Sequence record: NC_019405.1
DNA length: 64,000 nt
Strand: one strand, 5' to 3'
Shown here: positions 8,873 through 59,995 of the stretch, piece by piece
Layout: each line of letters opens with the position of its first letter
Position numbering within the stretch: position 1 is the first letter of the stretch
Made by a program: the position numbers and the translations under genes
Notes under the pieces: generated by a model
Databases searched by the model: none
Told to the model about the DNA's origin: nothing
What the model saw: the letters and a program-made list of their open reading frames with translations, nothing else

Positions 8873-9471
8873 GCGGTCTCCTGCTGGAGGTTAGCCGGCG
8901 CCGGGATGGCGTCGGAAAGGGCTTGCTCGACCAGGACCAGGATGTCCATGACGAGCTTGGGATTGAGGTCGGGCTCGGTGAGCGCGGCGGCCAGGGCGTT
9001 GATCCGGAACCACGTCGGGTCGGCGTGCGGGATCAGATTGAGATTGTGCAGGTGCAGCAGCGTCGAGCCGTGAGAGGCGGAGCGCTCCGAAAGCTCGCGC
9101 AGCACGCGGGCGCCAACGAGTTGGTCGGCCAGGACCTTGATCACGCTGCCCGAGGGGGCCAGGAGCAGACGCATCCAGTCGCCGTTCGGATCGTCGGCTT
9201 GGCGCAGGTCCGGATGGTCCAGCGTCTTGCCCCAGATCACCTCGTGCGCCTTGGCGGCCAGCGAGCGGCGGCGGCGGGCGAGGTCTTCGGCGTCCTTGGC
9301 GGCGCGCAGGCTGGACAGCGTCGTGGCGATCAACACCGAGGGAAAGAGCGCGACGACGAAGAACGCGGCGCGCTCAAGCGGCGAGGCGTGTGAAGCCACG
9401 ATATTCATGGCCGTGCCAATCAGCACCGTCGGATAGATCAAGCCGCCGTGGCGCTGGATGAACGAGATCAT
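8869..9471 (-). CDS. hypothetical membrane protein (200 aa)
   Basis: Two N-terminal hydrophobic segments; first gene after a promoter cassette. Confidence 0.75.
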   Translation of the reverse strand: MISFIQRHGGLIYPTVLIGTAMNIVASHASPLERAAFFVVALFPSVLIATTLSSLRAAKDAEDLARRRRSLAAKAHEVIWGKTLDHPDLRQADDPNGDWMRLLLAPSGSVIKVLADQLVGARVLRELSERSASHGSTLLHLHNLNLIPHADPTWFRINALAAALTEPDLNPKLVMDILVLVEQALSDAIPAPANLQQETA

Positions 9472-9509
9472 GAAAAGGGCCTCCGGCGTTGTCGTCGGAG
9501 GCCCTTCTA
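9469..9509 (-). repeat. 41-bp hairpin leader element, near-identical to 59504-59545 (inverted)
   Basis: TAGAAGGGCCTCCGACGACAACGCCGGAGGCCCTTTTCATG; the two copies differ by one T. Confidence 0.95.
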
Positions 9510-9545
9510 GCGAGTCGGTGTCAGGCTGTCAACACATGTCAGCCA
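9487..9545 (-). promoter_or_regulatory. phage promoter cassette (upstream-operator type)
   Basis: TGGCT-GACAT-GTGTTGACA-17-TAGAAG then GACGACAACG; GANTC in the spacer. Confidence 0.85.
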
Positions 9546-9548
9546 GGA

Positions 9549-10160
9549 TCAAGCGGCGTTCGTCACCAGGGTTTCCAGACGGTCAAAGCCCAGGTCGAGG
9601 CGGCCCCACATCGACGAGGGCGTATGCGGCTTGACCACCTCGGTGAACCGCGCGCGCTCCTTCAGATACATGCGGGCCATGGGGATGTTCGGCTGGCCGG
9701 TCGCCGGGTCCTTGATCGAGGCCTCGACATTGGCGATCCGGTCGGCGAGCTTGAGGATGCAGGCCTTGGGGTGCTCGCCCAGCTTGCGATAGATGTCCTC
9801 GTTGCGGGCCTTGCGGTTGGGGCCAATGCCTGAGACCGCCCAGACCAGCGCCGCGACGTCCTCGCCGAACTTTTCCTTGATCATCTCCAGCCGCTGCTCG
9901 GGCGTCATGTCGAGATGGGTGTCCTCGATCACGTCGTGCAGCTTGGCGGCGGCCGTCCAGGTAAAGCCCAGGAAGCCGTAGTCGTCGAGGATGCGCTCGA
10001 CCTTCTGGAGATGGTAGAGATAGGGCTGGCCGGCGTACTGCTGGTCCCCGTGGGCGGCGATGGCGAACTCCGTCGGGTCTTCCTGGCGCAGCGGCGCGCC
10101 CGGCGCCGTCGGGAGGCCGGTCAGGATGGAGGCGAGTTGGTCGAGCGAGGCGTCAGACAT
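9549..10160 (-). CDS. HD-domain small alarmone hydrolase (SpoT/Mesh1-like)
   Basis: AH..Q.Y...PY..H, LHDVIEDT, FG.DVA.LV, KLADR..N motifs; no synthetase domain. Confidence 0.85.
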   Translation of the reverse strand: MSDASLDQLASILTGLPTAPGAPLRQEDPTEFAIAAHGDQQYAGQPYLYHLQKVERILDDYGFLGFTWTAAAKLHDVIEDTHLDMTPEQRLEMIKEKFGEDVAALVWAVSGIGPNRKARNEDIYRKLGEHPKACILKLADRIANVEASIKDPATGQPNIPMARMYLKERARFTEVVKPHTPSSMWGRLDLGFDRLETLVTNAA

Positions 10161-10566
10161 GGGGCTTCTCGGAGATCGGGGTGAAGACTTCCAGGCCGTC
10201 GACGACCTGCATCAGATGCGTCGGCGGATGGGCGGGATTGTAGCGGATGTAGCCGGCGAGGCCGCCGTCGATCATCGCCCCGCCCCGCTCCTTGTAGTCG
10301 TGCCGGAAGCGCGAGACCAGGAACGAACCGTCAGGCATCTCGATCGCCGAGAACTGGGCCTGTCGGATCGAGGCCGCCGAGGTGATGTAGAGCCCGCCGT
10401 TCAGGGGATGGGTGAAGAGCCCGAAGTAGTTGTCGTGGCCCTTCTCGCGGTCCGGCGTCTCGGTGTAGAAGACGTGGAACGGCCCCTCGCGGTCGGGCAG
10501 GTCGTAATAGCCGACGTACTTGGCGTTGTAGTGCTTTTCGGCCCCGGCGATGTTGATGCTGCTCAT
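10153..10566 (-). CDS. hypothetical phage protein (137 aa)
   Basis: ATG 10566; SR.RHDY...IDGG motif. Confidence 0.75.
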   Translation of the reverse strand: MSSINIAGAEKHYNAKYVGYYDLPDREGPFHVFYTETPDREKGHDNYFGLFTHPLNGGLYITSAASIRQAQFSAIEMPDGSFLVSRFRHDYKERGGAMIDGGLAGYIRYNPAHPPTHLMQVVDGLEVFTPISEKPHV

Positions 10567-11066
10567 GCGACCCTCAGGAATTCTCCCCAGGCGGGGAGGG
10601 CGTGCTTCAGATAGGCGGCGTGCGCCTCGTCCGGCGTCGTGTAGCACCCGAGATAGCGGTACACCCCGTTGATCGTGACCTGGGCCTGGAACGGCTTCGT
10701 CTTGCTCCGGCTCTTGGTCACGCCCTTTGGAAGCGCGCCGACGTTCGGGCGGTTCACGAGGTTCTGGGACCGCGTCGCCTTTCGGAGGTTCTTGATCCGA
10801 TTGTTGCGCCGGTTCAAGTCCTTGTGGTCGACGTCGTGATCGGGCATCACCCCGTGATGGATCGCCCAGGCCACCTTGTGGGCGGCGATTTGAATTCGCC
10901 GGCCGCCATAGGAGACCTTCATCACTCGATAGCCGTCCTTGGTCACCGAGCCGCAGCGCTTGCGGGACTTGGAGCCCCGCACGGTGATGGCGCCGGTGGC
11001 GGGATCGTACTTGTAGCGCGCCCGGAGGAAGTCGACCGGGATCGAAAACTCTGCATCCCCCGACAT
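10563..11066 (-). CDS. HNH endonuclease with AP2-like C-terminus
   Basis: Y.YDP.TG, AHKVAWAIHHG..P..DVDHKD.NRRNNRI.NLR, YLG.Y.T..EA..AY. Confidence 0.9.
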   Translation of the reverse strand: MSGDAEFSIPVDFLRARYKYDPATGAITVRGSKSRKRCGSVTKDGYRVMKVSYGGRRIQIAAHKVAWAIHHGVMPDHDVDHKDLNRRNNRIKNLRKATRSQNLVNRPNVGALPKGVTKSRSKTKPFQAQVTINGVYRYLGCYTTPDEAHAAYLKHALPAWGEFLRVA

Positions 11067-11070
11067 AGGA

Positions 11071-16110: not shown

Positions 16111-16397
16111 CAGGCCGCGAGCCCGCGCTGCTTCAAGGCGACGATCTGCTCGATCTCCTTGAGGATGTGGTCCGACAGGCGGTCGGTCCGTTCCTTGATG
16201 CCGGCGGGGACGCCGATCTTGCACTGACCGATCTCGTGCAGGCGGTCGGAGACGGCCTTCAGGTCGATCAGGGTGTCGCTGATCAGCACCTCGGCGAGGC
16301 CGATGGCCTCGGTCTGGATGGCGGCGATCCGCTGGGCGGTGGTCTGCGCCGATTGGCCCGCGACGAGGGCCAGGGCGGCGGTGTTCTTCTGGGTCAT
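16110..16397 (-). CDS. hypothetical protein (95 aa)
   Basis: First gene after a promoter cassette; AAGGAG SD. Confidence 0.8.
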   Translation of the reverse strand: MTQKNTAALALVAGQSAQTTAQRIAAIQTEAIGLAEVLISDTLIDLKAVSDRLHEIGQCKIGVPAGIKERTDRLSDHILKEIEQIVALKQRGLAA

Positions 16398-16410
16398 GGA
16401 GGTCTCCTTC

Positions 16411-16459
16411 GTTGTCGTCGGGCGTGACTTCTAGTTGGGTTCCTGGAGGCTGTCAACAC
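16411..16459 (-). promoter_or_regulatory. phage promoter cassette, inside the 3' end of the upstream ORF
   Basis: GTGTTGACA-17-TAGAAG then CGACGACAACG. Confidence 0.85.
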
Positions 16460-17026: not shown

Positions 17027-18444
17027 ATCAGCGCTCCTTGGCTCGGATCGGCCGGCGCGTAGACGGCGCGGTTGATGGTGGTCTCCGGCTCGCCCGAGCG
17101 CTTGTTGGCGCCGTGACGCTTGATCGTGGCCCGGATGGCGTAGCGCTTGCCGGCCTCGGGACGGTACTTGCCGGTGTGGAAGTTCACCACCGCCGAGCCG
17201 TCGTCGCAGCGGATGGCCACGATGCAGGTCGTCTCGCCGAAGTCGTTGGTGTAGAGGTTGGTCCGCACGACCTCGCCCACGAAGTCCACGCGCTGGCCCT
17301 CGGCGGCGTCGAGGTGCTTGGCAGGCGGGCGCTGGGGAGCGTCGGCCTTCTTGCGGGCGTCCTCCTCGCGCTCCAGGACGCGGCCGACCGACAGACCGAC
17401 AGCGGCGACGATCACCCCGATGCGCTTGACCAGGACGAAATCTTCCTGGGCGAGCACCATCTTGATGTTCTCGTGGAACGGATTGCCCGGCTTCAGCGAG
17501 CGGATGTAGTCGGTGAAGCCCTCGCGGTCGAATTCCGGCTCGAAGCCCTTGTAGGAGTCGATGATCTCCTGGTTGCGCTTGCGCTCGTAGTCCGACAGGC
17601 CATAGCCCCGGTTGCCGAACATCAGCAGGCCGACATGCTTGCGCGAGTCTTCCTTGCTGTAGCCGCCGAGCCGGCGCGCCACGCGGTACGAGGTCCGCAG
17701 GAGTTCGCCCAGATCGACGTACTCCTCGCCCTTGCGCCAGCCGCCCGGATCACCCTTGAAGTTGTTCAGGTCATCCCAGAACGACAGCATGCGGACCGGA
17801 TCGGCCCCCATATAGGCTTTCAGGCACGAGGCCCCGATCATCTTGATCCCGTCGGCGGTCTCGCAGACGAAGGTGTGTTTGCGGCGCTGGTTGACGCCGC
17901 AGTGGGCGCACTCGCCAGCGTGTACACGCATCCCTTCCACGACGTCGTTGGCGGTCTTGTCGACCAGCTTGAGGTAGTGCCCCGTCTTCTCGGCGGCTTC
18001 GTAGATGCCCAGGACGCGGCCCTTCTCGCCGACCATCGGCGGAACCGACAGGGTGATCTCGATGCGGCGCACCACCATGGCCTCGTCGCTCAGATAGGGC
18101 GAGGGAATGTCGACCACCTTGCGCTCCAGGACCTCCAGGGTCTGGGCGCCGTGGGCGGCCCGCTTCTGGAGCTTGGCCAGCAGGCGCATGAAGCGTTCCT
18201 CGACGGCGAAGCCCATCATGAAGGTCAGGACGGCTTGGCCGTCGCGCACGCCTTCCTGGGCCTCCCACATGGCGGTTCGGTGAGCCTCGCGCTCCTGCTC
18301 GTCCTCGAAGATCGACACGCCCCTGGCGGTCACGACCTCGACGCCGTCGACCAGCACGCTGGCCTGATCGGCGACCGTCTCGGGACGCTCACCGTAGGTT
18401 TCCAGCATGTAGTCCTGGTAGCTGCCTTCGAATTCGCCAAACAT
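17023..18444 (-). CDS. 473-aa protein with Zn-ribbon-like motif and probable C-terminal OB fold
   Basis: CAHCGVNQRR...IGASCL; C-terminal beta-rich GQRVDFVGEVVR...YAIRATIKRH...ETTINRA. Confidence 0.8.
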   Translation of the reverse strand: MFGEFEGSYQDYMLETYGERPETVADQASVLVDGVEVVTARGVSIFEDEQEREAHRTAMWEAQEGVRDGQAVLTFMMGFAVEERFMRLLAKLQKRAAHGAQTLEVLERKVVDIPSPYLSDEAMVVRRIEITLSVPPMVGEKGRVLGIYEAAEKTGHYLKLVDKTANDVVEGMRVHAGECAHCGVNQRRKHTFVCETADGIKMIGASCLKAYMGADPVRMLSFWDDLNNFKGDPGGWRKGEEYVDLGELLRTSYRVARRLGGYSKEDSRKHVGLLMFGNRGYGLSDYERKRNQEIIDSYKGFEPEFDREGFTDYIRSLKPGNPFHENIKMVLAQEDFVLVKRIGVIVAAVGLSVGRVLEREEDARKKADAPQRPPAKHLDAAEGQRVDFVGEVVRTNLYTNDFGETTCIVAIRCDDGSAVVNFHTGKYRPEAGKRYAIRATIKRHGANKRSGEPETTINRAVYAPADPSQGALI

Positions 18445-18458
18445 GATCGGCTCCTCTC

Positions 18459-18518
18459 GCTGTCGTGAGGGAGCTTGTACGGACTCATGCCGATGCTGTC
18501 AACACTCTAACGCCAACA
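18459..18518 (-). promoter_or_regulatory. phage promoter cassette (upstream-operator type)
   Basis: TGTTGGCG-TTAGA-GTGTTGACA-17-TACAAG then ACGACAGCG; GANTC in the spacer. Confidence 0.85.
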
Positions 18519-18526
18519 AAGAATCG

Positions 18527-21999: not shown

Positions 22000-22010
22000 C
22001 AGGGCCTCCT

Positions 22011-28174: not shown

Positions 28175-28185
28175 GGAGGCCTCCT

Positions 28186-32497: not shown

Positions 32498-32510
32498 GCG
32501 GCCTCCTTCT

Positions 32511-41865: not shown

Positions 41866-41877
41866 AGAGGAGTTCCC

Positions 41878-45643: not shown

Positions 45644-45655
45644 GAGGAGGCTTCG

Positions 45656-47101: not shown

Positions 47102-47158
47102 TGGCGTTCTTGTGTTGACAAGGCCGGAGCCGCTGGCCTAGAACGTCGTGGACGACAA
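47102..47158 (+). promoter_or_regulatory. phage promoter cassette (upstream-operator type)
   Basis: TGGCG-TTCTT-GTGTTGACA-18-TAGAAC then GACGACAAC. Confidence 0.85.
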
Positions 47159-47169
47159 CAGGAGGGACC

Positions 47170-49605: not shown

Positions 49606-50057
49606 TCCAGTTCCTCAAGGACATCACGGGCGTCACCGCGCGCGAGGACGCCCTGGAGCGCGCAAAAGCCAAGGCCCTGCATGCCAATCAGTTGGCTCAG
49701 GCGCGCAAGGTCGGGGAATTTCAGGTGGTGCAGGAAGACCGCAAACTCTTCCACTATCAACTGTTTCTCACCCCCTCCACGCTCGACGGGTCTTGGTTTT
49801 ACCTGGGGAGCTACGGCCACATCTGTAGCCGGGTCAACGCCCACTCCTTCTCGTCTCTGGAAGAGGCCAAGGTGGCGGGTGCGGCGGCGGGCGCTCAATG
49901 CCGCGAGCGCATCGCCGGCGAGATGGAGCGCCAGCAGCAGTTCCGCAATATCTACGCCCCGCCGGAGTTCCTGGCCAAATCCGTCAACGCCTTCAAGTCG
50001 AGTGAGGACCTGCTGATCGAGGTCGCGCGGACGGTGTCCCAGAGGTACCAGCGATGA
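49602..50057 (+). CDS. hypothetical protein (151 aa)
   Basis: Coupled ORF. Confidence 0.7.
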   Translation: MIQFLKDITGVTAREDALERAKAKALHANQLAQARKVGEFQVVQEDRKLFHYQLFLTPSTLDGSWFYLGSYGHICSRVNAHSFSSLEEAKVAGAAAGAQCRERIAGEMERQQQFRNIYAPPEFLAKSVNAFKSSEDLLIEVARTVSQRYQR

Positions 50058-50320
50058 GCGCGGTCGCTCTGAAGTTCGACACGCTCGCCGACGCCGAGAT
50101 GGCGGTCGCCCAGGCGCTCTACGAGCACTGGGTGCGGAGCGAGCGCGCGCGTCATGTCACCTGGAACCTCCCCGGCTGGGTCGAGCCGCCCGCCTGGGCG
50201 GACATGAACTGGACCGAGCGCACCCACTGGCTGGTCGAGGCCGGCCTCGTCGTCGACTGCCTGCTCGAATTCGTCAAGAACAACCCCGGCGCCTATGGAG
50301 AGAGCCATGAACCGTCGTGA
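50054..50320 (+). CDS. hypothetical protein (88 aa)
   Basis: Coupled ORF. Confidence 0.7.
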   Translation: MSAVALKFDTLADAEMAVAQALYEHWVRSERARHVTWNLPGWVEPPAWADMNWTERTHWLVEAGLVVDCLLEFVKNNPGAYGESHEPS

Positions 50321-50927
50321 ACTGATCCTGGGCGCCGGCGCGGTCGTCGCGGCCTCGGCCCTGCCGACCGTGGTCGAGGCCGCGCGCGTCAAGCCCATTC
50401 GACGCCTGCTCCTGGAGAGCGGCTTCGTCCAGCACGAGACCTTCGCCACCTCCTGGATGGCGACCTGGACGGAAGACTCCCACGCCTCGCGGCATGCCGA
50501 GGTCGTGCGCGCCTGGATCGACGAAACGGTCCAGAGCGGCTATCTCAAGTGCGGCGGCGAGACCTACATCCTCGATAAGCACGTGCGGCTTCCGCAGGTG
50601 GACTTCACGATCTCGCCGACCGACAAGGTCTGGTCGCACTGGTCGGGCTGGGTCGAGGAGGCGGGGCTGAAGGTCGTCGTGCGCGTGCTCGCGTCCGATC
50701 CCCAGGTCGATGCGACCTTCGATCCGGTCTATCTGATGAAGACCCGTTGGCAGGCCGACGGGACCCAGGCTCCGGAGGAGACGCGCTACCTCGTCCGCCG
50801 GCCGCTCCTGCGTTACCACGAGGAGCGCGAGCTTCGCTACGCCCTCGGAGACACCGCCGGCTACTCGCCGAACTCGTTGATCGAGTTCGACAATAGCTGG
50901 CTTCTCGATATGGCGAAAAGCGCATGA
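50307..50927 (+). CDS. protein with twin-arginine-like signal peptide (206 aa)
   Basis: MNRRELILGAGAVVAASALPTVVEA; GGAG SD. Confidence 0.7.
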   Translation: MNRRELILGAGAVVAASALPTVVEAARVKPIRRLLLESGFVQHETFATSWMATWTEDSHASRHAEVVRAWIDETVQSGYLKCGGETYILDKHVRLPQVDFTISPTDKVWSHWSGWVEEAGLKVVVRVLASDPQVDATFDPVYLMKTRWQADGTQAPEETRYLVRRPLLRYHEERELRYALGDTAGYSPNSLIEFDNSWLLDMAKSA

Positions 50928-51424
50928 TCCGCTCGCGTAACGAGCCGCCCGAGGTCACCGCCAGCAAGATGGCCGAGCGGTGGTCGGCCCAAAAGAACCT
51001 CATCAGCGGTTTCCTGGCGGGGCCGGCGGAGGCGCTGAACGCCAATTGGCAGTATGTGAGCGCGCTCCTCTGGGCGCACTGTGATCTGCGGGTCGTGGGG
51101 GATTGGCAGGACCGCCCGGTGCGAGGCTGGACGGCCGAGTCCATCAACGCGCCGTTCGACATCTGCATGATCGAGGACCGTGCCTCGGCGACGATCCAGA
51201 ACGGCGATCTCGCCGTGACCATGCTCACCACGCTCCTGCCGCATGCGGAGATCACGATCACCAAGGCGTCCGGACGCAACTGGGATTGGGAAGTCCTGGT
51301 CGACACCCGTTTCGCCGCCCACGCCAAGTTCGAGGGCATGGTCTGGGGCTTTGGCCCCAGCATCGCCCTGGCGGCTTGGCGCGCCTATTTCAGCTACGTC
51401 AACAAGGAGCCCACCGATGTCTGA
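50924..51424 (+). CDS. hypothetical protein (166 aa)
   Basis: Coupled ORF. Confidence 0.7.
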   Translation: MIRSRNEPPEVTASKMAERWSAQKNLISGFLAGPAEALNANWQYVSALLWAHCDLRVVGDWQDRPVRGWTAESINAPFDICMIEDRASATIQNGDLAVTMLTTLLPHAEITITKASGRNWDWEVLVDTRFAAHAKFEGMVWGFGPSIALAAWRAYFSYVNKEPTDV

Positions 51425-51635
51425 CGTCTTCGACGAGGTCGAGCGCCGCCTGAACCGCCGGCGTCCTGGCTTCTGGATTCACAAGGTCGCTATCGCGATC
51501 ATCGTGGTGATCGGCCTGTTGGTCGTCGCCGGCGCCGCCGTCCAGGTCTTCAACCCGACCCTGGCGGTCCAGTGGCAGGCCAAGCAGGACGCGGCCTATG
51601 ACCGCGCCTACGAAGAAGCCCGGCGGGCCGAGTGA
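51417..51635 (+). CDS. small membrane protein (72 aa)
   Basis: Single TM helix; AAGGAG SD. Confidence 0.7.
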   Translation: MSDVFDEVERRLNRRRPGFWIHKVAIAIIVVIGLLVVAGAAVQVFNPTLAVQWQAKQDAAYDRAYEEARRAE

Positions 51636-52126
51636 TGGCGATCTTCGCGCCTGAATACACCTGGGAGGCGATCGGCACCGATGTCGCCGTTGGCCTGACC
51701 GAGGCGGTGATCCGGGGCGAGGCCGCGCCGGTCTGCGTCGGCTCCTCGCTGCACGCCATGGAATTCCATGTCATCTGGCGCGGCGATCTCTACCGGGCCT
51801 TCACCGGCATGGGGAGCGATCCCGACTGGACCTGCGCCGAGAAGGGCGTGCGGGTTCCGCATCCGCTGGACGGCAAGAAGATCGACGAGATCGAGAAGGT
51901 CCAGTATCGCGACGAGGAACGCTACCGCCGCGAGATCGAGACCATGCCCGGCCGGCACCTCTACATCTGCCGCAAGACCGACGACCTCCAGGACATCCTC
52001 GCCCGCATCCCGATGGACCTGCGGATGCGCCACGAGATGTCGAACATGATCACCCTCCTGGCCCGGATGATGCTGGTCCAGAACTCCACCCGCACGCTTT
52101 CCCGCTCCAAACTCGACCGGTTCTGA
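51632..52126 (+). CDS. hypothetical protein (164 aa)
   Basis: Coupled ORF (start 51632 or 51635). Confidence 0.7.
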   Translation: MMAIFAPEYTWEAIGTDVAVGLTEAVIRGEAAPVCVGSSLHAMEFHVIWRGDLYRAFTGMGSDPDWTCAEKGVRVPHPLDGKKIDEIEKVQYRDEERYRREIETMPGRHLYICRKTDDLQDILARIPMDLRMRHEMSNMITLLARMMLVQNSTRTLSRSKLDRF

Positions 52127-52127
52127 C

Positions 52128-52649
52128 ATGACCACCCAACGCCTCGATTTCTCCAGCGACGTCAACTGGCCCCCGAAGGTCGACTTCGATCTCAAGAAGC
52201 TGCGCTACGACGTGGCGGTCGAAATCCTGGAGACCCTGTGGCCCAAGCATCGCCACGACAAGCGCCACGACCTGTCGCTGCTGGGCTCGCTCTGCAAGGT
52301 CAAGTTCGGCGCGGCGGGCTTCAAGGCCGACGACATCAAGGAGCAGACCCTGGCGGTCATGCGCACGCTCGAAGCGGCCAACTTCGTGCGCAACGACGGC
52401 GGCGACTGGCACCTGACGGCGACCGGGGCGATCTGGGTCCTGGTGGCCCGGACTGCGCCCTCGGGCTGGGCGACCGAGAGCGCCCTGCTTCACCACATCG
52501 AACTGGCGACCTTCCCCGCCGCCGAGATCATCTGGGCGGTCGAGTCCTGCCCCTATTTCCACATCCGCAAGGGAAGCCTGTTCGACGACAAGGTCTTCGA
52601 TCTCCAGGCCTACCAGCAGCCGCTCGACGGGTGGAACGGATGGCGCTGA
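52128..52649 (+). CDS. hypothetical protein with winged-helix-like motif (173 aa)
   Basis: VMRTLEAANFV....W.LTATG. Confidence 0.7.
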   Translation: MTTQRLDFSSDVNWPPKVDFDLKKLRYDVAVEILETLWPKHRHDKRHDLSLLGSLCKVKFGAAGFKADDIKEQTLAVMRTLEAANFVRNDGGDWHLTATGAIWVLVARTAPSGWATESALLHHIELATFPAAEIIWAVESCPYFHIRKGSLFDDKVFDLQAYQQPLDGWNGWR

Positions 52650-53176
52650 TCCCCAAGACCTGGGACAGCCTGATTCTCGACCTGCGGACCGCCGCCGAGG
52701 ACAAGGACCGCGAGGCCTGGGACGACGCGATCCAGGCCCTGGAAAGCGCCTTCGACGAGCATGTCGAGGGACCGCTGGAGAGCCATCCCAACACCCTGGC
52801 CTGGAAGAAGAGCCTCGACGAGAAGACGCGGTTCCTGGCCGGCTGGCGCCACTGGGGCGGCGGGGCGCGTGACGTCCCCGACGCCTACCGGGGCGACCCG
52901 CACTTCAACCGGGGCCGGTCCGGCGCGGCGATCGCCCAGGACATGAGCGCGGTGAAGGACCTTGACGCGTGTCACCATCCGGTCAAGCATCGGATCGCCG
53001 GCGGGGATAATCAGGTCCTGCCGCGCCACCCGGCCGTCTATGGCTCCTACGCGGTCGAAATCTGCCGCCTCTGCCGGGGGTGGTCCCTGGTCCAGCACGG
53101 GACGCCCCGGTGGCGTCCTGGTCCGTACTATGACGCCTACGAGAAGGCGACGCGCGAGGAAGAGGAGCGCTGCTGA
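52640..53176 (+). CDS. hypothetical protein (178 aa)
   Basis: ATG 52640. Confidence 0.7.
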   Translation: MALIPKTWDSLILDLRTAAEDKDREAWDDAIQALESAFDEHVEGPLESHPNTLAWKKSLDEKTRFLAGWRHWGGGARDVPDAYRGDPHFNRGRSGAAIAQDMSAVKDLDACHHPVKHRIAGGDNQVLPRHPAVYGSYAVEICRLCRGWSLVQHGTPRWRPGPYYDAYEKATREEEERC

Positions 53177-53871
53177 TGCTCTATGTGTTCGGGGATATCC
53201 ACGGCCGCCTCGACCTCCTGGAGAAGGCGCGACACGAAATCCGTGTACGCGGCGACTGCACGCAGATGATCTTCCTCGGGGACTATGTCGATCGCGGCCC
53301 TGACAGCAGGGGCGTGGTCGAGGCCGTGATGGCGCTCCAGGCCCAGGGCGAGATCGCCCTGATGGGCAACCATGAGGAAATGATGCTGACCGCCTGTCAG
53401 ATCAAGTCCTACAACGCCATGTCCAAGCTCTGGGTGTCGAACGGCGGCAAGCAGACCCTGAAGTCCTACGGCGCCGGCGACAATGCCTGGAACGCCAAGT
53501 GGGACCTGATCCCCCAGGAGCACGTCGACTGGCTGGCGCGGCTCAAGCCGATCCACGAGACGCCGGGGCGGGTGTTCGTTCACGCCGGCCTCGCGCCGGG
53601 CGTGGCGGTCAAGATGCAGGAGGAGGAACACCTTCTCTGGATCAGGGACAAGTTCCTCAACGCCTCGGCCGACCAGTTCGAAAAGCACGTCGTCCACGGC
53701 CACACCCACACCCATGCGCGCAAGAAGATCGAAGAGCCCGAGCTTCTCGCCCACCGGACCAACCTCGACACCGGGGCCTTCTATACCGGCGTCCTGGCCG
53801 TCGGGGTGTTCGATCCGGACGGCTATGGCGGACCCGAGGAGGTGCTGTTGATCCGCGAGGACGACGCATGA
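53176..53871 (+). CDS. PPP-family calcineurin-like metallophosphoesterase (lambda phosphatase/ApaH-like)
   Basis: GDIHG, GDYVDRG, GNHE, VHAG, VHGHT, DTG motifs. Confidence 0.92.
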   Translation: MLYVFGDIHGRLDLLEKARHEIRVRGDCTQMIFLGDYVDRGPDSRGVVEAVMALQAQGEIALMGNHEEMMLTACQIKSYNAMSKLWVSNGGKQTLKSYGAGDNAWNAKWDLIPQEHVDWLARLKPIHETPGRVFVHAGLAPGVAVKMQEEEHLLWIRDKFLNASADQFEKHVVHGHTHTHARKKIEEPELLAHRTNLDTGAFYTGVLAVGVFDPDGYGGPEEVLLIREDDA

Positions 53872-54443
53872 TCCCAGACTTCGTCCAGAAGGCGCGCAAG
53901 CTCCTGCGCCTCTATGGCGACAAGCCCAAGGTCAAGCCGGCCGATCCCGCCGCGCCGCTCGGGGGAAGCGTGTCTTCGCCGCCCCTCCCGGCGGCGCCGT
54001 CTCTATCCTCCACCCACGGGTTCTGGGGCGGCCCTGGCGGCGGCTCGATCCACGTGGGCTCCGGCCATGCGACCGCCATGGGCTCGGGCGGGGGCGGTAG
54101 CACCCAAATCCTGGTCTACAACGGCGGGACGGTGGGCTGGGCGACCATGCCCCAGGCCGTGGTCACGGATGTCAAGACGGTCAGCAAGACGCGGCCCGGC
54201 CTGACGGCGGGAGAGGACGAGGTCATCACGACCATGGTTCGCTATGGCGATGTCGAACTGGTCCTGGAGCGCGACCGCAGGTTCGCCTTCGTCCGTTTCG
54301 GCCTGGAGCTTGCCTATCCCCGTGTCTCGGGCCGTATGCTCAAGTCCTTGATCAAGAAGGGCTATCTGAAGGCTATCGAGCATGACGAGATGGGCGGGCC
54401 GCAGGTGGTGGTGGTCGTGGCGGGCAAGGTCGCGGTCTGCTGA
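53868..54443 (+). CDS. hypothetical protein (191 aa; Gly/Ser-rich linker, winged-helix-like end)
   Basis: VSGRMLKSLIKKGYL. Confidence 0.7.
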   Translation: MIPDFVQKARKLLRLYGDKPKVKPADPAAPLGGSVSSPPLPAAPSLSSTHGFWGGPGGGSIHVGSGHATAMGSGGGGSTQILVYNGGTVGWATMPQAVVTDVKTVSKTRPGLTAGEDEVITTMVRYGDVELVLERDRRFAFVRFGLELAYPRVSGRMLKSLIKKGYLKAIEHDEMGGPQVVVVVAGKVAVC

Positions 54444-54447
54444 ATTT

Positions 54448-54507
54448 TGTTGGCGTTAGAACGTTGACAGCCTCGGCGTGATGTCATAAAAGCCTCCTCG
54501 ACGACAA
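54448..54507 (+). promoter_or_regulatory. phage promoter cassette with SD-masking hairpin
   Basis: TGTTGGCG-TTAGA-ACGTTGACA-17-TAAAAG; GCCTCCTCG-ACGACAA-CGAGGAGGC. Confidence 0.88.
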
Positions 54508-54520
54508 CGAGGAGGCCCAC

Positions 54521-54940
54521 ATGGCTTACGCAATTCCGGACCTGAGCACGTTCACGTTCCACGATCCCAAGGTCGAACGTTTCGCCAAGGCGATGATCTC
54601 GACGATCGAGACCGCCCAGACCATCCTCACGGCCTTCGCCAACGATCTCGCCGACAATCCTCTTCAGGCGTTCGAGCATAGCTACGGCGCCAAGATGGCC
54701 GCCGCCCACAGGGACGTCGCCAAGGGGCTGCTCAACGAAGTCCTCGACGCGCTGCTGCACGGTCAGGACAAGACCTGGGCCTACATCGGCCAGGACCTGC
54801 GCGAGCGGCTGATGTATCGCGTGATCTACGCGGCCTCGAACCCGCCGCGCTCGACCAACGTCGAGGGCAACGACATGGCCCGCTTCGTCCTGCGCGCCGA
54901 GGCCGACATGCTCGACCGCATGACCAAGAGCCGCTTCTGA
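54521..54940 (+). CDS. hypothetical helical protein (139 aa)
   Basis: First gene after a promoter. Confidence 0.8.
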   Translation: MAYAIPDLSTFTFHDPKVERFAKAMISTIETAQTILTAFANDLADNPLQAFEHSYGAKMAAAHRDVAKGLLNEVLDALLHGQDKTWAYIGQDLRERLMYRVIYAASNPPRSTNVEGNDMARFVLRAEADMLDRMTKSRF

Positions 54941-55254
54941 TGCGGATCGTCGACTTCGCGACGTTCGTGACGCTTCCGGCTGGGACCCTCTACCAGGAGA
55001 TCGATCAGTACGGGAGCCCCATCAGCGCCCTGGCGATCCGCCACGACGTGCTGTTCGACGGCGATCGCCCGTTCGACTTCATCTACGAGGAAATCCTCTA
55101 CCAGACGGCCGACGGCTTCCTGGGCGACCCGCCGAAGCTGGCCGAGTTGGGGACCAAGCGCTGGGGGCTCTTCGATGACGAGACCCTGTTCATCGTCTAC
55201 GAGACGCAGGACCGCGCCCGGCTGGCCAAGATCATCCTGGGAGACGCCGCATGA
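54940..55254 (+). CDS. hypothetical protein (104 aa)
   Basis: F..LP.GTLY motif. Confidence 0.75.
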   Translation: MRIVDFATFVTLPAGTLYQEIDQYGSPISALAIRHDVLFDGDRPFDFIYEEILYQTADGFLGDPPKLAELGTKRWGLFDDETLFIVYETQDRARLAKIILGDAA

Positions 55255-55634
55255 AGCCGCTCGACGAACGCATCCGCGACGCGATCGACACCCCGCGCCC
55301 GGCCTGGATCGAGCGCGTCGGGAGCCGCTATCAGGTGATCACCAAGGGCGTGCTGTTCCCGAACACGCGCAATCCGGTCGGCAAGACCTGGAGCCTGAAG
55401 AGCGGCGCCCTGACCTACGTTCGCCAGCAATACCTCACCCTGCTGGAGGGCGACTGCCCGCTGCCCGCCCCGACCCAGGAAGAGCGCGACGCCTATCAGA
55501 ACGAAGGGCGCGAGCGCCGCGCCGCCGTCGAGCAACTGTCGATGGAACTGGACCGGCCCTATGCCGAGGTCTGGCGCGCGGTCCGCAACCTGGAGGCCAA
55601 GGGCCTGATCCGTTTCGAGGAGGCTCGCCCATGA
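55251..55634 (+). CDS. hypothetical protein with C-terminal winged helix (127 aa)
   Basis: QLSMELDRPYAEVWRAVRNLEAKGLI. Confidence 0.75.
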   Translation: MKPLDERIRDAIDTPRPAWIERVGSRYQVITKGVLFPNTRNPVGKTWSLKSGALTYVRQQYLTLLEGDCPLPAPTQEERDAYQNEGRERRAAVEQLSMELDRPYAEVWRAVRNLEAKGLIRFEEARP

Positions 55635-55852
55635 CGTCGCAGACCCAGAGAACCCTCATCCTGTCCGGCGTGGGCTTCTTCATCGGCTTCATGCTGGTGT
55701 TTGGCTTTATGAGCGTCTCGCAGGCCTCCTACAACCGAGGCTATCGAGACGCCAAGGCCGACACGCGCCGGGACGAGCCCGCATGCTTTACCTCCCAGCG
55801 CTGCTACCTGGGCCAGGACGCCGACGGGCGGTGGTTCATCGAGCCGAAATAG
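55631..55852 (+). CDS. small membrane protein (73 aa)
   Basis: N-terminal TM helix; Y..GY motif. Confidence 0.7.
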   Translation: MTSQTQRTLILSGVGFFIGFMLVFGFMSVSQASYNRGYRDAKADTRRDEPACFTSQRCYLGQDADGRWFIEPK

Positions 55853-55853
55853 T

Positions 55854-55912
55854 TGGCGTTCAAGTGTTGCCAAAGCTGATCTGATCAGCTAGAACCCTCG
55901 CCGACGACAACG
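55854..55912 (+). promoter_or_regulatory. phage promoter cassette with palindromic spacer
   Basis: TGGCG-TTCAA-GTGTTGCCA-17-TAGAAC then CGACGACAACG. Confidence 0.8.
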
Positions 55913-55931
55913 CAAGAGGAGCCCCCGAGCC

Positions 55932-56312
55932 GTGGAACACCTGAACCGCGCCATCGACCCCCGCATCGGCTACCTGAACTCGGGCGTCTACTACGCCTTC
56001 GTCGACGGCTACGACAAGCCCGAGACGCGGGGCACGCTAGAAGAGGTCGAGATCGCCCTGGGCCTGCGCGCTGCGAAGCCGGCTCCGACCAAGCGCATCG
56101 TCGCCGCCCAGCCGGCCGTCAAGACCTACTCGGTCCACATGCGGTTCGAATATCCGGGCTGGAGCTACGTCGACGGCATCACCTACGACGGTATGCTCGG
56201 CCGCACGAAGGCCGAAGCGATCCGCAACGCCCGCGCCGAGGCCTTTGCCGACGGTCACCTCGGCGTCGGCCAGGGCCGGGTGTGGTTCAAGGCCACGGAA
56301 GAGGACGCCTAG
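55932..56312 (+). CDS. hypothetical protein (126 aa)
   Basis: GTG with GAGGAG SD. Confidence 0.75.
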   Translation: MEHLNRAIDPRIGYLNSGVYYAFVDGYDKPETRGTLEEVEIALGLRAAKPAPTKRIVAAQPAVKTYSVHMRFEYPGWSYVDGITYDGMLGRTKAEAIRNARAEAFADGHLGVGQGRVWFKATEEDA

Positions 56313-56546
56313 ATGAGCCGCATCCGCGTCATCGACCGCGACGGGTTCATGCAGGGCTGGGTCGACGCCCGCGTCGGCCTTCCCACCTATTCCGGTCCCG
56401 TCACCCGCTGGACCGAGAAAGGCTCGTTCTGGACCACCGGCTCGGACGGCGAGGAGCGCCTGTGGAAGGCCGGCAACCACCAGCCCTGCGTCTACAGGAG
56501 CAAGCTCCGCAAGAGCGATATCATCCACGAGCGACGGGAGGGCTGA
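56313..56546 (+). CDS. hypothetical protein (77 aa)
   Basis: Adjacent ORF. Confidence 0.7.
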   Translation: MSRIRVIDRDGFMQGWVDARVGLPTYSGPVTRWTEKGSFWTTGSDGEERLWKAGNHQPCVYRSKLRKSDIIHERREG

Positions 56547-56547
56547 C

Positions 56548-56865
56548 ATGGGCCTGCTGAGCATCTACCTGACCGGCGCGGCGCTCACCGGCGCGGCGAC
56601 GGCCGTCTATCTCTTCAAGGTCCGGGCTCCGGCGACCAAGGAGACCTACACCACCACCTGGGGCTATGTCGAAACCGACGACGTCAATGAGACCGGCAAC
56701 CACCTGGGGGCGATCCTCCTGATGGCGGTCCTCTGGTTCCTCACCGTCCCGCTCGCGATCGTCATGGGCCTCTGGCATCTCCTGGTCCGCGCCATCGACA
56801 AGGCTTGGCGCCGCTGCACGCCGCGCCGCGAGAAGACGCACGTTGGCACCCATCGCTATCTGTGA
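56548..56865 (+). CDS. membrane protein (105 aa)
   Basis: Two hydrophobic segments. Confidence 0.75.
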   Translation: MGLLSIYLTGAALTGAATAVYLFKVRAPATKETYTTTWGYVETDDVNETGNHLGAILLMAVLWFLTVPLAIVMGLWHLLVRAIDKAWRRCTPRREKTHVGTHRYL

Positions 56866-56881
56866 TCGCCGCCAGCCCGGC

Positions 56882-56923
56882 TGGCTTCAGTGTGTTGACG
56901 GCGCGTCGATCGCCCGCTAAGAA
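56882..56923 (+). promoter_or_regulatory. phage promoter (upstream-operator type, no ACGACAA leader)
   Basis: TGGCT-TCAGT-GTGTTGACG-17-TAAGAA. Confidence 0.75.
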
Positions 56924-56981
56924 GGGCTGACGGTCACGCTCTGGCTGCATGAATTTTCAAGAGACAAAGGGCCTTAAGTCC

Positions 56982-59012
56982 ATGGATTTCCACGTCTTTA
57001 AGACGGCCGTCGCCAAGCAGTGGGCCGCGATGACCAAGGATGACGCGACCCTGTTCCGCGTCGACGTCGACAAGGACCTCCTGTGGTCGACCTACCTGAA
57101 GGCGTTCCCGGCTGGGACCGATCCGATCTTCCGCGAGCGCTCCGAGCACGACTGCTCGTGCTGCCGCAACTTCATCCGCAACGCCGGCGACGCCGTGGCG
57201 GTGGTCAACGGCCAGATCGTGACGATCTGGGATGGCAAGATCGAGGGCGAGCCGGCCTATCAGCAGGTCTCCCAGACCCTGGCGGCGCTGGTCCGCTCGC
57301 GCCCGGTGCGCGACATCTTCCTGCACGACCAGAAGACCATCGGGACCGACAAGAACGTCGAGACCATGCTGGGCGGCGACGTCACCTGGAACCACTTCTT
57401 CGTCAATGTCCCCTCGCGCTTCGTCAAGAAGGGCAAGGACATCCCGACCGCGCTCCACCTCCCGCGCACGGCGCAGGAAACGCTCCTGCGCGCCGTCAAT
57501 GAGATCACCGACGAGGCGATCGACACGGTGCTGGACCTGATCGCCCAGAACGCGCTCTATCGCGGCGCCGAGCACAAGGCGGCGGTGGTGGCGTTCCAGA
57601 AGGCCAAGAAGACCTTCGAGGGCCTGTCGGCCGCCGACAAGGCGCTGAAGGCTTGGGTCAACGTCGCCAGCGGCGAACTCTGGGGCTCGGTCTCGGGCAT
57701 CCGGAGCACGGTGATCGGCTCGCTGCTGGTCGACCTGTCGGCCGATGTCGACCTGGAGGAGGCGGTCAAGAAGTTCGAGGCCAAGGTCGCGCCGTACAAT
57801 TACAAGCGCACGACCGCCCTGGTGACCAAGAAGCAGATCGAGAACGCCAAGAAGACGATCTCCGACCTGGGCCTGACCTCGGCCCTGGAGCGGCGCTACG
57901 CCGTCCTCAAGGACGTGTCGATCAACGACGTGCTGTTCGCCGACCGCGACGCCAAGTCGGTGATGAACGACGTCTTCGACGATCTGGCGGCCGACGTCGC
58001 CGAGAAGACCAAGTCCTATGATAAGGTCGAGGAGGTGTCGATCGACAAGTTCCTGGCCGACATCCTCCCGAGGGTGACGAGCGTCGAGGCCCTGGTCGAG
58101 AACCGCCTGACGAGCAATTTCGTCAGCCTGATCGCGCCGGTCGATCCGACCGCCGGCTCCCTCTTCAAGTGGGGGAATAACTTCTCCTGGTCCTATGCCG
58201 GGGAGGTGGCGGACTCGATCAAGGCCCGCGTCAAGGCGGCCGGCGGCAACGTCACCGGCGATCTCTGCTGCCGTCTGGCGTGGTTCAACTATGACGACCT
58301 CGACTTCCACATGAAGGAGCCGGGCGGCAACCTGATCTACTTCCGCCAGAAGTCCTCGCCCTACACGGGCGGGCGCCTCGACGTCGACATGAACGCCGGC
58401 GGGGGCCATACCCGCGAGCCGGTCGAGAACATCTTCTACGGCGACCGCCGGACGATGAAGGAAGGCGTCTACGAACTGATGGTCCATCAGTACAGCAAGC
58501 GCGAGTCCAGCAACGTCGGCTTCGAGGTGGAGATCGACTACCTGGGCTCGGTCACCCGCTACGCCTACACCACGGCCCTGCGCCAGGAGCAGGTCGTCAA
58601 GGTGGCGCAGTTCAAGTACAGCCACGCGCGCGGCATCGAGTTCATCTCCTCGCTCCCGGCCTCGTCGGCGAGCAAGGACGTCTGGGGCGTGAAGACCGAG
58701 ACCTTCCGCAGGGTCAACGTCATCATGCTCTCGCCCAACCACTGGGAAGGCGAGCCGGGCGTGGGGAACAAGCACTGGTTCTTCATGCTGGACGGAGGCG
58801 TCAACGAGGACGGCGCCCGTGGCTTCTACAACGAGTTCCTGAAGGATAGCCTCACGCCCCACCGTCGCGTCTTCGAGATGCTGGGGTCCAAGCTGAAGCC
58901 CGCGCCGGCGACTGAACAACTCTCCGGCCTGGGCTTCTCCTCGACCAAGCGCGACGAACTCGTCGTGCGCGTCAAGGGGGCCTTCACGCGTACCCTCAAG
59001 ATCAAATTCTAA
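56982..59012 (+). CDS. large phage protein (676 aa; start 56949 possible) with Cys cluster and YfaP/DUF2135-like segment
   Basis: HDCSCCRNF; W.NYDDLDFHM.EP.G...GG.LDVDMNAG...PVENI. Confidence 0.85.
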   Translation: MDFHVFKTAVAKQWAAMTKDDATLFRVDVDKDLLWSTYLKAFPAGTDPIFRERSEHDCSCCRNFIRNAGDAVAVVNGQIVTIWDGKIEGEPAYQQVSQTLAALVRSRPVRDIFLHDQKTIGTDKNVETMLGGDVTWNHFFVNVPSRFVKKGKDIPTALHLPRTAQETLLRAVNEITDEAIDTVLDLIAQNALYRGAEHKAAVVAFQKAKKTFEGLSAADKALKAWVNVASGELWGSVSGIRSTVIGSLLVDLSADVDLEEAVKKFEAKVAPYNYKRTTALVTKKQIENAKKTISDLGLTSALERRYAVLKDVSINDVLFADRDAKSVMNDVFDDLAADVAEKTKSYDKVEEVSIDKFLADILPRVTSVEALVENRLTSNFVSLIAPVDPTAGSLFKWGNNFSWSYAGEVADSIKARVKAAGGNVTGDLCCRLAWFNYDDLDFHMKEPGGNLIYFRQKSSPYTGGRLDVDMNAGGGHTREPVENIFYGDRRTMKEGVYELMVHQYSKRESSNVGFEVEIDYLGSVTRYAYTTALRQEQVVKVAQFKYSHARGIEFISSLPASSASKDVWGVKTETFRRVNVIMLSPNHWEGEPGVGNKHWFFMLDGGVNEDGARGFYNEFLKDSLTPHRRVFEMLGSKLKPAPATEQLSGLGFSSTKRDELVVRVKGAFTRTLKIKF

Positions 59013-59031
59013 CGGAAGGACCTGAAAGACC

Positions 59032-59454
59032 ATGAGCACCGACCTCTTCGAGATCGCCGCGCGCGAGAAGTTCCGCTTCGAAAGCCCCAAGGGCCTCCTG
59101 GGCGTGGAAGAACTGTTCGACCTGCCACTGACCAGCACCGTCGCCGGCAAGGCCAACCTGAACGATATCGCCGTCGACCTGTTCAAGCAGATCAAGGACC
59201 TCGACAACATCTCGTTCGTCACGCCCAAGAAGGTCGACCCCTCGATCGGCCAGCGCCTGGACATCGTCAAGCGGGTGATCGAGATCAAGCAGGCCGAGAA
59301 CGCGGCCAAGCTGAAGACCGCCCAGGACAAGGAGACCCTGCGCATCCTCGACGAGGCGATCGCCGCCAAGAAGTCCGAGAAGATCGCCGGCACCTCGCTG
59401 GAAGACCTCGAAGCCCAGCGCGCGGCCCTGCTCTCGGGCGGCGCCTCCGCCTAA
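59032..59454 (+). CDS. hypothetical protein (140 aa), partner of the preceding gene
   Basis: FE.A.R.K.RF.S.KG....E.L.DLPL motif; coiled C-terminus. Confidence 0.85.
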   Translation: MSTDLFEIAAREKFRFESPKGLLGVEELFDLPLTSTVAGKANLNDIAVDLFKQIKDLDNISFVTPKKVDPSIGQRLDIVKRVIEIKQAENAAKLKTAQDKETLRILDEAIAAKKSEKIAGTSLEDLEAQRAALLSGGASA

Positions 59455-59480
59455 GCCTTCGGGCGGGCTGACATAGGCGC

Positions 59481-59527
59481 TTGACAACACTCTCGCGCCA
59501 ACATAGAAGGGCCTCCGACGACAACGC
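59481..59527 (+). promoter_or_regulatory. phage promoter cassette (spacer-operator type)
   Basis: TTGACA-ACACTCTCGCGCCAACA-TAGAAG then CGACGACAACG. Confidence 0.92.
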
Positions 59528-59541
59528 CGGAGGCCCTTTTT
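59507..59541 (+). terminator. terminator-like hairpin overlapping the start site and SD of the cassette
   Basis: 11-bp perfect stem AAGGGCCTCCG/CGGAGGCCCTT, loop ACGACAACGC, T-tract. Confidence 0.6.
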
Positions 59542-59542
59542 C

Positions 59543-59995
59543 ATGCCTTATCCGATCCAGATCGATCCCATCATCCTCGCCCTCGGCAGCGCCTGGAAGG
59601 CGGCCGACGCCTTGGCGCTCGACCTGCGCCACAAGTGGTCCTGTGTCACCAATGACCGCAGCGCCTACGAGGCCTGGAAGATCGCCGACGACGTCCGCAA
59701 CGCCGCCTTCAAGGCCATGACCTACGCCCTGCCCGATCCGGGCAGGCCGGTGTTCATCAGCCCGACCGACTGGCTGGCCGACAAGGACAACTGGCGCACC
59801 GAGTACGCGCCCGTCCGGGTCTGGAATGGCGCGGACCACTACAAGGACTGGTACCCGTGCCTGGGCCACTACGAGTTCAACGTTCGCACCGGCGAGCGCT
59901 TCTACCGTGGGGCCGAGATGTTCGACCGCTGCGTCGAGGAGGCCGCCCGGCGCAATGCCGAGTACGCGGCATACTACGCCAAGCAGGCCGCATGA
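59543..59995 (+). CDS. hypothetical protein (150 aa)
   Basis: GGAGG SD inside the hairpin. Confidence 0.8.
   Translation: MPYPIQIDPIILALGSAWKAADALALDLRHKWSCVTNDRSAYEAWKIADDVRNAAFKAMTYALPDPGRPVFISPTDWLADKDNWRTEYAPVRVWNGADHYKDWYPCLGHYEFNVRTGERFYRGAEMFDRCVEEAARRNAEYAAYYAKQAA

Follow-up and report, generated by a model that had tools for sequence, protein, structure and literature searches.

A duplicated terminator-shaped hairpin of Caulobacter phage phiCbK with a predicted transcription start and a Shine-Dalgarno sequence inside it

A stretch of 64,000 nucleotides from sequence record NC_019405.1, referred to below as the window, contains two copies (A and B) of a cassette in which a promoter, a terminator-shaped hairpin and a Shine-Dalgarno sequence (SD) overlap immediately upstream from a start codon. 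The window belongs to Caulobacter phage phiCbK, a siphovirus of the Dolichocephalovirinae whose host is an alphaproteobacterium; positions 50000-64000 were matched to JX163858.1 with 100% identity across their full length. The window runs along the reverse strand of JX163858, its position w being 83816 - w in that record. The whole phiCbK genome was rebuilt from pieces for scanning, and the joins agreed with the window. The G+C content of the window is about 66%, and the GC skew turns at about 36 kb, the boundary of two divergent gene arrays that run on the minus strand from 36 kb to position 1 and on the plus strand from 36 kb to 64 kb. Copy A separates CbK_gp169, encoding an HD-domain phosphohydrolase, from CbK_gp168, and copy B separates CbK_gp274 from CbK_gp275. 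The genes flanking A are unrelated to those flanking B, and Pfam and PHROGs yielded no function for the genes downstream of the two copies. The parts of the two loci are as follows.

9549-10160, minus: CbK_gp169, HD-domain phosphohydrolase gene upstream of copy A; its TGA stop codon lies about 40 nt before the hairpin
9469-9532, minus: whole copy A cassette, from the -35 to the ATG of CbK_gp168
9532-9527, minus: copy A -35
9509-9504, minus: copy A -10
9506-9496, minus: copy A 5' arm
G9496 or A9495, minus: copy A predicted start site (+1)
9495-9486, minus: copy A loop
9485-9475, minus: copy A 3' arm, with the SD at 9484-9480
9476-9473, minus: copy A T-tract (four T)
9471-9469, minus: ATG of CbK_gp168
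59032-59454, plus: CbK_gp274, gene without assigned function upstream of copy B; its TAA stop codon lies about 50 nt before the hairpin
59481-59545, plus: whole copy B cassette, from the -35 to the ATG of CbK_gp275
59481-59486, plus: copy B -35, TTGACA
59504-59509, plus: copy B -10, TAGAAG
59507-59517, plus: copy B 5' arm
G59517 or A59518, plus: copy B predicted start site (+1)
59518-59527, plus: copy B loop, leader motif ACGACAACGC
59528-59538, plus: copy B 3' arm, with the SD (GGAGG) at 59529-59533
59537-59541, plus: copy B T-tract (five T)
59543-59545, plus: ATG of CbK_gp275

An exact 32-mer, AAGGGCCTCCGACGACAACGCCGGAGGCCCTT, occurs twice in the window (9475-9506, minus; 59507-59538, plus), with no copy expected by chance (100 shuffles, even with three mismatches allowed). 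Identity extends over the 41/42-nt block running from TAGAAG to the ATG (9509-9469, minus; 59504-59545, plus), the only difference being the tract of four T in A and five in B. This confirms the duplication of the element 50 kb apart, which had been claimed in a preliminary description of this DNA. The -35/-10 spacers differ between A and B, indicating that the duplicated unit comprises only the -10 to the ATG. An upstream sequence shared by the two copies, GGCTGACAT, was rejected as a part of the element since it was not enriched in the window (19 matches versus 14.5 expected) and since its distance from the -35 differs between A and B.

The two 11-nt arms of the preliminary description are present, and GGAGG is located in the 3' arm as stated there, but the stem computed by RNAfold is longer (13 bp), as it includes A-U and G-U pairs formed with the first T residues of the tract. 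The 10-nt loop is closed by an inner 2-bp stem leaving ACAA. The free energy of the hairpin was -25.8 kcal/mol (z = -7.4 and -7.7 for the two copies), and none of 200 shuffled sequences folded as well. The RNA beginning at the predicted +1 was not more structured than shuffled sequences (z = +0.6 for B and -1.2 for A), as anticipated by the proposal that a locally initiated transcript would be open.

Copies A and B are not isolated elements but the extreme form of a promoter-leader family. The pattern TTGACA-N17-TAGAAG, with at most two mismatches, had 14 matches in the window against 0.89 expected (16-fold), 13 of which were co-oriented with the genes. Each promoter match is followed by the same layout: TTGACA, 17 bp, TAGAAG, 7-9 bp, GACGACAAC(G), 0-3 bp, (A)GGAGG, 5-8 bp, and ATG or GTG. 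About 20 modules were found genome-wide, all of them between 18 and 94 kb of JX163858 and 16 of them inside the window; in all 13 modules checked among these 16, the 3' end coincides with an annotated gene start or with a start codon from the list of open reading frames (ORFs). Since this layout recurs after each promoter match, the segment initially attributed to the hairpin as its own loop is in fact a leader motif common to the family. In family terms, the 3' arm is the SD and its flank, and the 5' arm corresponds to the bases separating the -10 from the +1. Only A and B, among the ~20 modules, add a long G+C stem and a T-tract. The idea of a one-piece element thus retains a plausible mechanism, which the family supports, although the element is one variant of the promoter-leader family and not a free-standing invention. 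The other modules in the window are listed below.

54464-54523, plus: next strongest hairpin, GCCTCCTCG / CGAGGAGGC, 9 bp, -17.5 to -18 kcal/mol, z = -5.8
18442-18502, minus: bulged anti-SD/SD stem, CTCCCTC / GAGAGGAG, -13.3 kcal/mol
45599-45658, plus: CCTCG / CGAGG stem, -10.9 kcal/mol, with a leader of its own
61967-62062, plus: 29-mer promoter of copy B, long leader, second conserved hairpin at 62015-62044
21997-22054, minus: CCTCG / CGAGG stem
28172-28232, minus: TCCT / AGGA stem, ends at the start of CbK_gp208
55867-55934, plus: offset CCTC, two-part stem
38686-38747, plus: weak stem
41820-41880, plus: weak stem
32495-32557, minus: no anti-SD, heads the operon holding tgrL (gp216); separate canonical terminator just upstream (~32585-32611)
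36234-36295, plus: no anti-SD, first of the rightward-array promoters, where the two arrays diverge
16395-16456, minus: no anti-SD
23445-23503, minus: no anti-SD
47115-47172, plus: no anti-SD

The consensus of the Caulobacter RpoD (sigma-73) promoters consists of a -35 TTGaCgS and a -10 GCtANAWC (PMC8144410, PMC13004042). A -35 and a -10 conforming to this consensus at the 17-bp spacing were found in both copies, as TTGACAG-N14-GCTAGAAG in A and TTGACAA-N14-CATAGAAG in B, and the hexamers of the family agree with it together with their extensions. In the RNA-seq study of phiCbK infection, which reports per-gene time courses, tgrL was measured as early and highly expressed (PMC10688885). This gene is the third one behind module 32495-32557, suggesting that the family is probably the early promoter set of the phage. 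The literature search returned no paper on phiCbK promoters or on the promoter-leader family; the phiCbK genome paper mentions terminators detected by TransTermHP, without promoter analysis (PMC3556154).

The position of the start site was deduced from this family. TAGAAG, which shares bases with the beginning of the stem, is the only -10 candidate beginning with TA at the 17-bp spacing. In nearly every member, the GACGA block begins 7-9 nt (mostly 8) after the -10 and is preceded by variable bases. Since conservation starts sharply at the usual distance of a +1, with a pyrimidine before a purine, transcription is predicted to start at G59517/A59518 in B and at G9496/A9495 in A (JX100813 ~183517 and ~133497, respectively). 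The +1 would therefore fall at the junction of the 5' arm and the loop, on the final base of the former or the initial base of the latter, in agreement with the initial estimate of about 59516-59518.

The hairpins of A and B were compared to the intrinsic terminators of the phage. A genome scan for hairpins followed by TTTT was noisy (172 matches), and only clean intergenic cases with a perfect stem, chosen by eye, were used. These clean terminators display an A-tract, a GGSCC-type stem of 10-13 bp (-21 to -29 kcal/mol) and CCTTTT, followed by some mixed bases. This form is also that of copies A and B (-23.8 kcal/mol in the hairpin-TTTT scan), which possess the G+C-rich hairpin of a rho-independent terminator. 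Five hairpins of such quality are co-oriented with the genes in the window (~32585, ~14146, A, ~1349, and B), and the 28-kb rightward array contains none besides copy B. In GenBank JX100813, copy B bears the annotation of a rho-independent terminator, on the basis of the TransTermHP analysis of the depositors, and copy A is annotated as a terminator in phages Karma and Swift. The terminator shape noted at the outset is thus in line with the phage's own terminators and with existing annotations. Searches of Rfam gave no match in the window at gathering thresholds, and the matches below threshold were only to terminator hairpins of small RNAs. A general terminator and promoter scan missed both copies because its loop limit was 8 nt and the -10 that it expected was TATAAT. 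The hairpins lie 40-50 nt after the upstream stop codons and are co-oriented with the genes, so that terminating ribosomes would not block their folding.

The ordinary terminators of phiCbK (32585-32611, ~14146, and ~1349) share with A and B the A-tract, the GGSCC stem of 10-13 bp (~-22 to -26 kcal/mol), the 3' CCTTTT, and the intergenic, gene-co-oriented location. In contrast, they have loops of 4-5 nt, lack an SD, and are clear of or upstream of the next promoter, whereas in A and B the loop has 10 nt and is made of the leader motif, the 3' arm contains an SD, and the 5' arm is partly shared with the -10. Another terminator-shaped hairpin was observed outside the window, at JX163858 ~185350-185420 (minus), where AGCCCTCG-TTAACCA-CGAGGGCT is followed by TTTTCC and ATG. 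It contains an SD-like GAGGG in the 3' arm and lies 23 nt after the TTGACA of a promoter-like sequence of a second class (see below). The start would again be placed where the 5' arm ends, which is the geometry of A and B with unrelated arms.

Three further phages, Karma, BL10 and Rogue, the last belonging to another genus, harbor exactly two copies of the cassette each, at the same two sites. Over the complete module, -35 through ATG, phiCbK and Rogue share 98% identity, versus 75-79% for the adjacent coding sequence. The sole change in the stem is a C to T substitution in the 5' arm of copy A, present in Rogue and Karma, which leaves a G-U pair in the sense RNA and would amount to a mismatch in DNA or in antisense RNA. 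Since the two copies of Rogue and Karma differ from each other at one base, the copies evolve separately but slowly. Exact-pattern scans of IMG/VR detected the cassette only in the phiCbK relatives Karma, Rogue and BL10, in addition to chance matches in A+T-rich phages.

The distant phage Colossus (JX100810) shows the same design in a family of its own, with TTGACN, 17 bp ending in GTTTCTT, TACAAG, 8 bp, and GACGATCA...GGAGG...ATG. The arms are CCTCCATG / CATGGAGG (9 bp, twice) or CCTCCTCG / CGAGGAGG, and for one of the copies a terminator is annotated whose end lies 6 nt before the gp320 ATG. The Colossus modules with anti-SD/SD stems are located as follows.

20410-20475, JX100810: module with an anti-SD/SD stem
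28275-28340, JX100810: module with an anti-SD/SD stem
21488-21545, JX100810: module with an anti-SD/SD stem

Pairing between an anti-SD and the SD is not limited to A and B. CCTC is present in the 8 nt preceding the leader motif in 13 of the 20 modules, for a chance per module of roughly 3% (a rough estimate). Predicted stabilities of the modules were -24.8 kcal/mol for A and B, followed by -17.5, -14.6 and -13.3, down to about -5 kcal/mol. Since orthologues show a single stem substitution, an arm-swap test between paralogues was used in place of covariation. Within phiCbK, cognate arms paired better than swapped arms (p = 0.002). For 41 distinct modules of five phages (phiCbK, Karma, Rogue, BL10, and Colossus), the mean values were -10.2 kcal/mol for cognate and -8.5 kcal/mol for swapped arms (0 of 20000 permutations), a p-value inflated by related sequences. 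Qualitative evidence, including the Colossus family, is more telling than this value: the three bases adjacent to the loop vary between versions and yet stay complementary (ATG/CAT, TCG/CGA, CCG/CGG), as does the distal GGG/CCC extension in A and B.

Three modules are shielded from transcription reading in from upstream: 36234-36295 by its divergent start, 32495-32557 by its location directly behind a separate terminator, and a variant at ~13900 by the terminator at ~14146. The anti-SD is present in none of these 3 modules and in 13 of the 17 exposed modules (hypergeometric probability 35/1140 = 0.03). The numbers are small, and the direction of the correlation is that predicted by masking of read-through RNA.

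Copies A and B are real, conserved regulatory cassettes, and the mechanism initially proposed for them is plausible on the basis of their sequence. With moderate confidence, we consider that each copy combines a terminator, an early promoter and a 5' untranslated region within the RpoD-type promoter-leader family. The anatomy, fold, conservation, family context and terminator match of the cassettes were computed as described above; from these features we infer the start site, termination, masking and early timing as follows. In A and B, extension of the -10/+1 stretch and of the flank of the SD would have produced a 13-bp G+C-rich hairpin with 4-5 U after it. An RNA polymerase arriving from upstream would transcribe both arms, and the hairpin would form ~40-50 nt past the upstream stop codon, leading to termination in the U-tract, 2-6 nt before the ATG. 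In RNA molecules resulting from read-through, the SD would be locked in the stem. A polymerase recruited locally would start at the G or A located at the 3' end of the 5' arm and would produce an RNA devoid of the anti-SD arm and of the terminator. This RNA would have an open leader of 25 nt (GACGACAACGCCGGAGGCCCUUUU(U)CAUG) and would be translated.

Several observations weigh against this proposal. The U-tract is short (4 U in A and 5 U in B, followed by CAUG) and 2-4 of the U residues can pair with the A-tract, so that termination efficiency could be low; the accepted terminators of the phage have equally short U-tracts. The T-rich spacer between the SD and the ATG could serve translation instead. 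The very G+C-rich -10/+1 stretch (GGGCCTCC) might weaken the local promoter. Apart from the inflation of the p-value for the 41 modules, the arm-swap test in phiCbK was not significant without A and B (p = 0.11), indicating that most of the pairing in this phage reflects the shared consensus CCTCG...CGAGGAGG. Module 61967 keeps CCTCG without an adjacent SD partner, so that promoter ancestry may account for some of the anti-SD conservation. Finally, the sole RNA-seq study consists of per-gene time courses (PMC10688885), and the 5' and 3' ends of transcripts at A and B are predicted positions.

Four other explanations were considered. The hairpin could act as a translational mask only, blocking translation of read-through RNA with little or no termination, the T-tract being a spacer between the SD and the ATG. 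The short U-tract is compatible with this explanation, as are the T-rich spacers found elsewhere in the genome (e.g. GGAGATTTTCATG at JX163858 87966) and the anti-SD stems without a T-tract that are common in the family. Module 54464-54523 (-17.5 kcal/mol) is an example; lacking a T-tract, it would mask the SD only. However, just A and B combine the longest stem, a flanking A-tract and a T-tract, which is the pattern of the clean terminators of the phage, and both were called terminators by TransTermHP. Moreover, long arrays with many promoters need some stops, and A and B account for two of the five candidates in 64 kb. We therefore regard a pure mask as unlikely. A start site located upstream of the stem appears less likely still. 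The hairpin would then belong to the local mRNA, as a stabilizing 5' stem-loop, a self-attenuator, or a translational brake requiring a factor or the ribosome. Stem-loops protecting the 5' end of mRNAs are common in bacteria, and the start site of A and B is a prediction. Against this, TAGAAG overlaps the stem, and the polymerase would have to begin inside the -10; GACGA also marks a sharp beginning of the family's conserved block, 7-9 nt past the -10. In addition, a promoter whose transcript terminates itself 25 nt on, with the SD hidden at -25.8 kcal/mol, would be nearly silent, and yet the module is 98% conserved.

A role at the DNA level is as improbable as an upstream start. The 11-bp inverted repeat would be the operator of a dimeric phage or host protein, or a conserved recombination site moving gene cassettes, as proposed for the promoter-early stem-loops (PeSLs) of T4-type phages, the RNA fold being incidental. 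This explanation is favored by the mosaic structure of copy B, which joins a promoter half found in two other modules to the hairpin half of copy A, by the variation of the gene following copy B across phiCbK, Karma, Rogue and BL10, and by the mediation of such shuffling by the PeSLs of T4-type phages (PMC2839356). The reverse of an operator is observed in the family, the center (ACGACAAC) being conserved while the arms vary and co-vary. The only stem substitution keeps G-U pairing in the sense RNA, where DNA or antisense RNA would have a C-A mismatch, and an insertion following copy B in Karma is not flanked by a second cassette. A role in recombination would in any case add to the regulatory role and not replace it. 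Finally, the identity of the two copies within phiCbK could simply reflect a recent duplication of a hitch-hiking sequence without function of its own. This is hardly credible, as the conservation pattern contradicts it: three further phages, one of them of another genus, retain both copies at both sites, and the 98% identity contrasts with 75-79% in the flanking genes.

Extending the composite terminator-promoter-leader proposal from A and B to the family, we tentatively suggest a design rule for the phiCbK-like phages (Dolichocephalovirinae), which may well not hold. Early promoters that are read into from upstream would carry an anti-SD between the -10 and the +1, and shielded promoters would not. 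The first genes would then be translated only from RNA initiated at their own promoters, upstream RNA being masked or, at the two strongest copies, terminated. If so, expression of the cassettes would be independent of genomic position, which fits their being moved about.

Several observations bear on the movement and surroundings of the modules. A 29-mer, TTGACAACACTCTCGCGCCAACATAGAA(G/C), is common to 45599-45627, 59481-59509 and 61967-61995 (plus), where it precedes three different leaders; from the -35 through the spacer to the -10, module 45599-45658 matches copy B at 28 of 29 bases (TAGAAC for TAGAAG). Copy B thus joins a promoter half from this trio to a hairpin half from copy A, a mosaic suggesting recombination between modules. 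The gene that immediately follows copy B is not the same in phiCbK, Karma, Rogue and BL10, indicating that the cassette marks a variable junction. In Karma, an extra ORF of 102 codons is inserted exactly at the ATG after copy B, and a second flanking cassette is absent. The second hairpin of module 61967-62062, TGTCCGAAAT...ATTTCGGACA (62015-62044, plus), is located between the leader motif and the SD and is kept in Karma, Rogue and BL10 with small changes. The antisense strand of the hairpin of module 54464-54523 (54485-54515, minus) is followed by TTTTAT, the complement of the -10 TAAAAG, and is terminator-like for antisense transcription.

Upstream of the promoters, (T)TGGCG-N5-(A/T)GTG abuts the -35 in ~15 of the 20 modules, as at 18503-18520 (minus), 54446-54463 (plus) and 28233-28250 (minus). 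An UP-like element is one possibility for this sequence, a regulator-binding site another. A sigma-54 reading of the TGGC element was rejected, since the spacing to TTG, determined by hand, is 2 nt too long. Colossus lacks the TGGCG element and has GTTTCTT before the -10 instead. CbK_gp169, which ends just before copy A, is labelled RelA/SpoT-like in some records, and the -10/+1 stretch of copy A that directly follows it is very G+C-rich, a feature tied to (p)ppGpp-sensitive promoters; this may be a coincidence.

The second promoter-like class, (T)GTCGTGAATCTTGACA, was found outside the window in ~20 copies in the replication, structural and lysis regions (JX163858 7.6-188 kb). A GANTC (CcrM) site lies beside the -35 of these sequences, and GTTAACCA is often present downstream. 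The phage encodes a GcrA-like regulator (window 35422-35970, minus), and this class may therefore consist of promoters depending on methylation and GcrA.

If the composite model for A and B is true, 42 bases suffice to stop upstream transcription, start new transcription and set translation. The cassette would then serve as a small, portable insulator in the model host Caulobacter and as a natural example of context-independent expression, useful for synthetic biology in high-G+C alphaproteobacteria. It would also give phiCbK, a model phage in wide use, a first promoter and terminator map of its early region, and would extend the idea of composite promoter-terminators beyond T4-type phages.

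Two known systems are close to this model. PeSLs are conserved intergenic cassettes of T4-type phages, with a strong sigma-70-like early promoter, an SD and an ATG at the 3' end, and a stem-loop that terminates upstream transcription in reporter assays (Arbiol et al. 2010, PMC2839356; Comeau et al. 2014, PMC4122927). The phiCbK cassettes resemble PeSLs as conserved intergenic units of less than 100 bp that occur in many copies and in which a stem-loop overlaps an early promoter of sigma-70 type, the 3' end being formed by an SD and a start codon. Both types of cassette are tied to small genes without assigned function and to differences in gene content between close relatives. The stem-loop of PeSLs is usually located after the -35 and before the -10, or over the -10, whereas the phiCbK stem follows the -10 and spans the +1 and the SD; it could therefore also mask translation. 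The terminator form is restricted to two of the ~20 phiCbK modules. Recombination between PeSL copies includes the formation of mini-circles; the related observations in phiCbK are the ~20 modules, the occurrence of the 29-mer of copy B in two other modules (one exact, one 28/29), the mosaic structure of copy B and the variable gene after it and, in the other direction, the absence of two cassettes around the Karma insertion. There is no sequence homology indicating common descent, phiCbK being an unrelated siphovirus and PeSLs belonging to T4-type myoviruses.

In T4 genes e, soc, 49 and I-TevI, the SD is sequestered on early RNA and a late promoter is located in the 5' strand of the helix (reviewed by Uzan & Miller 2010, PMC3014915). 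A and B resemble these genes, by prediction, in that the SD lies inside a stable helix on upstream RNA and that RNA from the internal promoter lacks the 5' strand and is translated. The T4 internal promoter is late (gp55-dependent) and provides a temporal switch, whereas that of phiCbK is of the host RpoD type and probably early, and the nearest upstream promoters are of the same class as A and B; no early-to-late switch is therefore expected. The T4 hairpins have no U-tract, are not terminators, and have been proven by experiment, whereas the phiCbK element is known from its sequence. The precedent of e, soc and 49 invoked in the preliminary description is thus real, but these hairpins are not the only one, PeSLs being closer. 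The terminator annotation of copy B in GenBank likewise predates this analysis. The novelty resides in the union of a terminator, an internal start and SD masking in one hairpin, each ingredient having a proven precedent in T4-type phages, so that no new principle is involved. The phiCbK element works like PeSLs and like the T4 hairpins and is a member of neither group.

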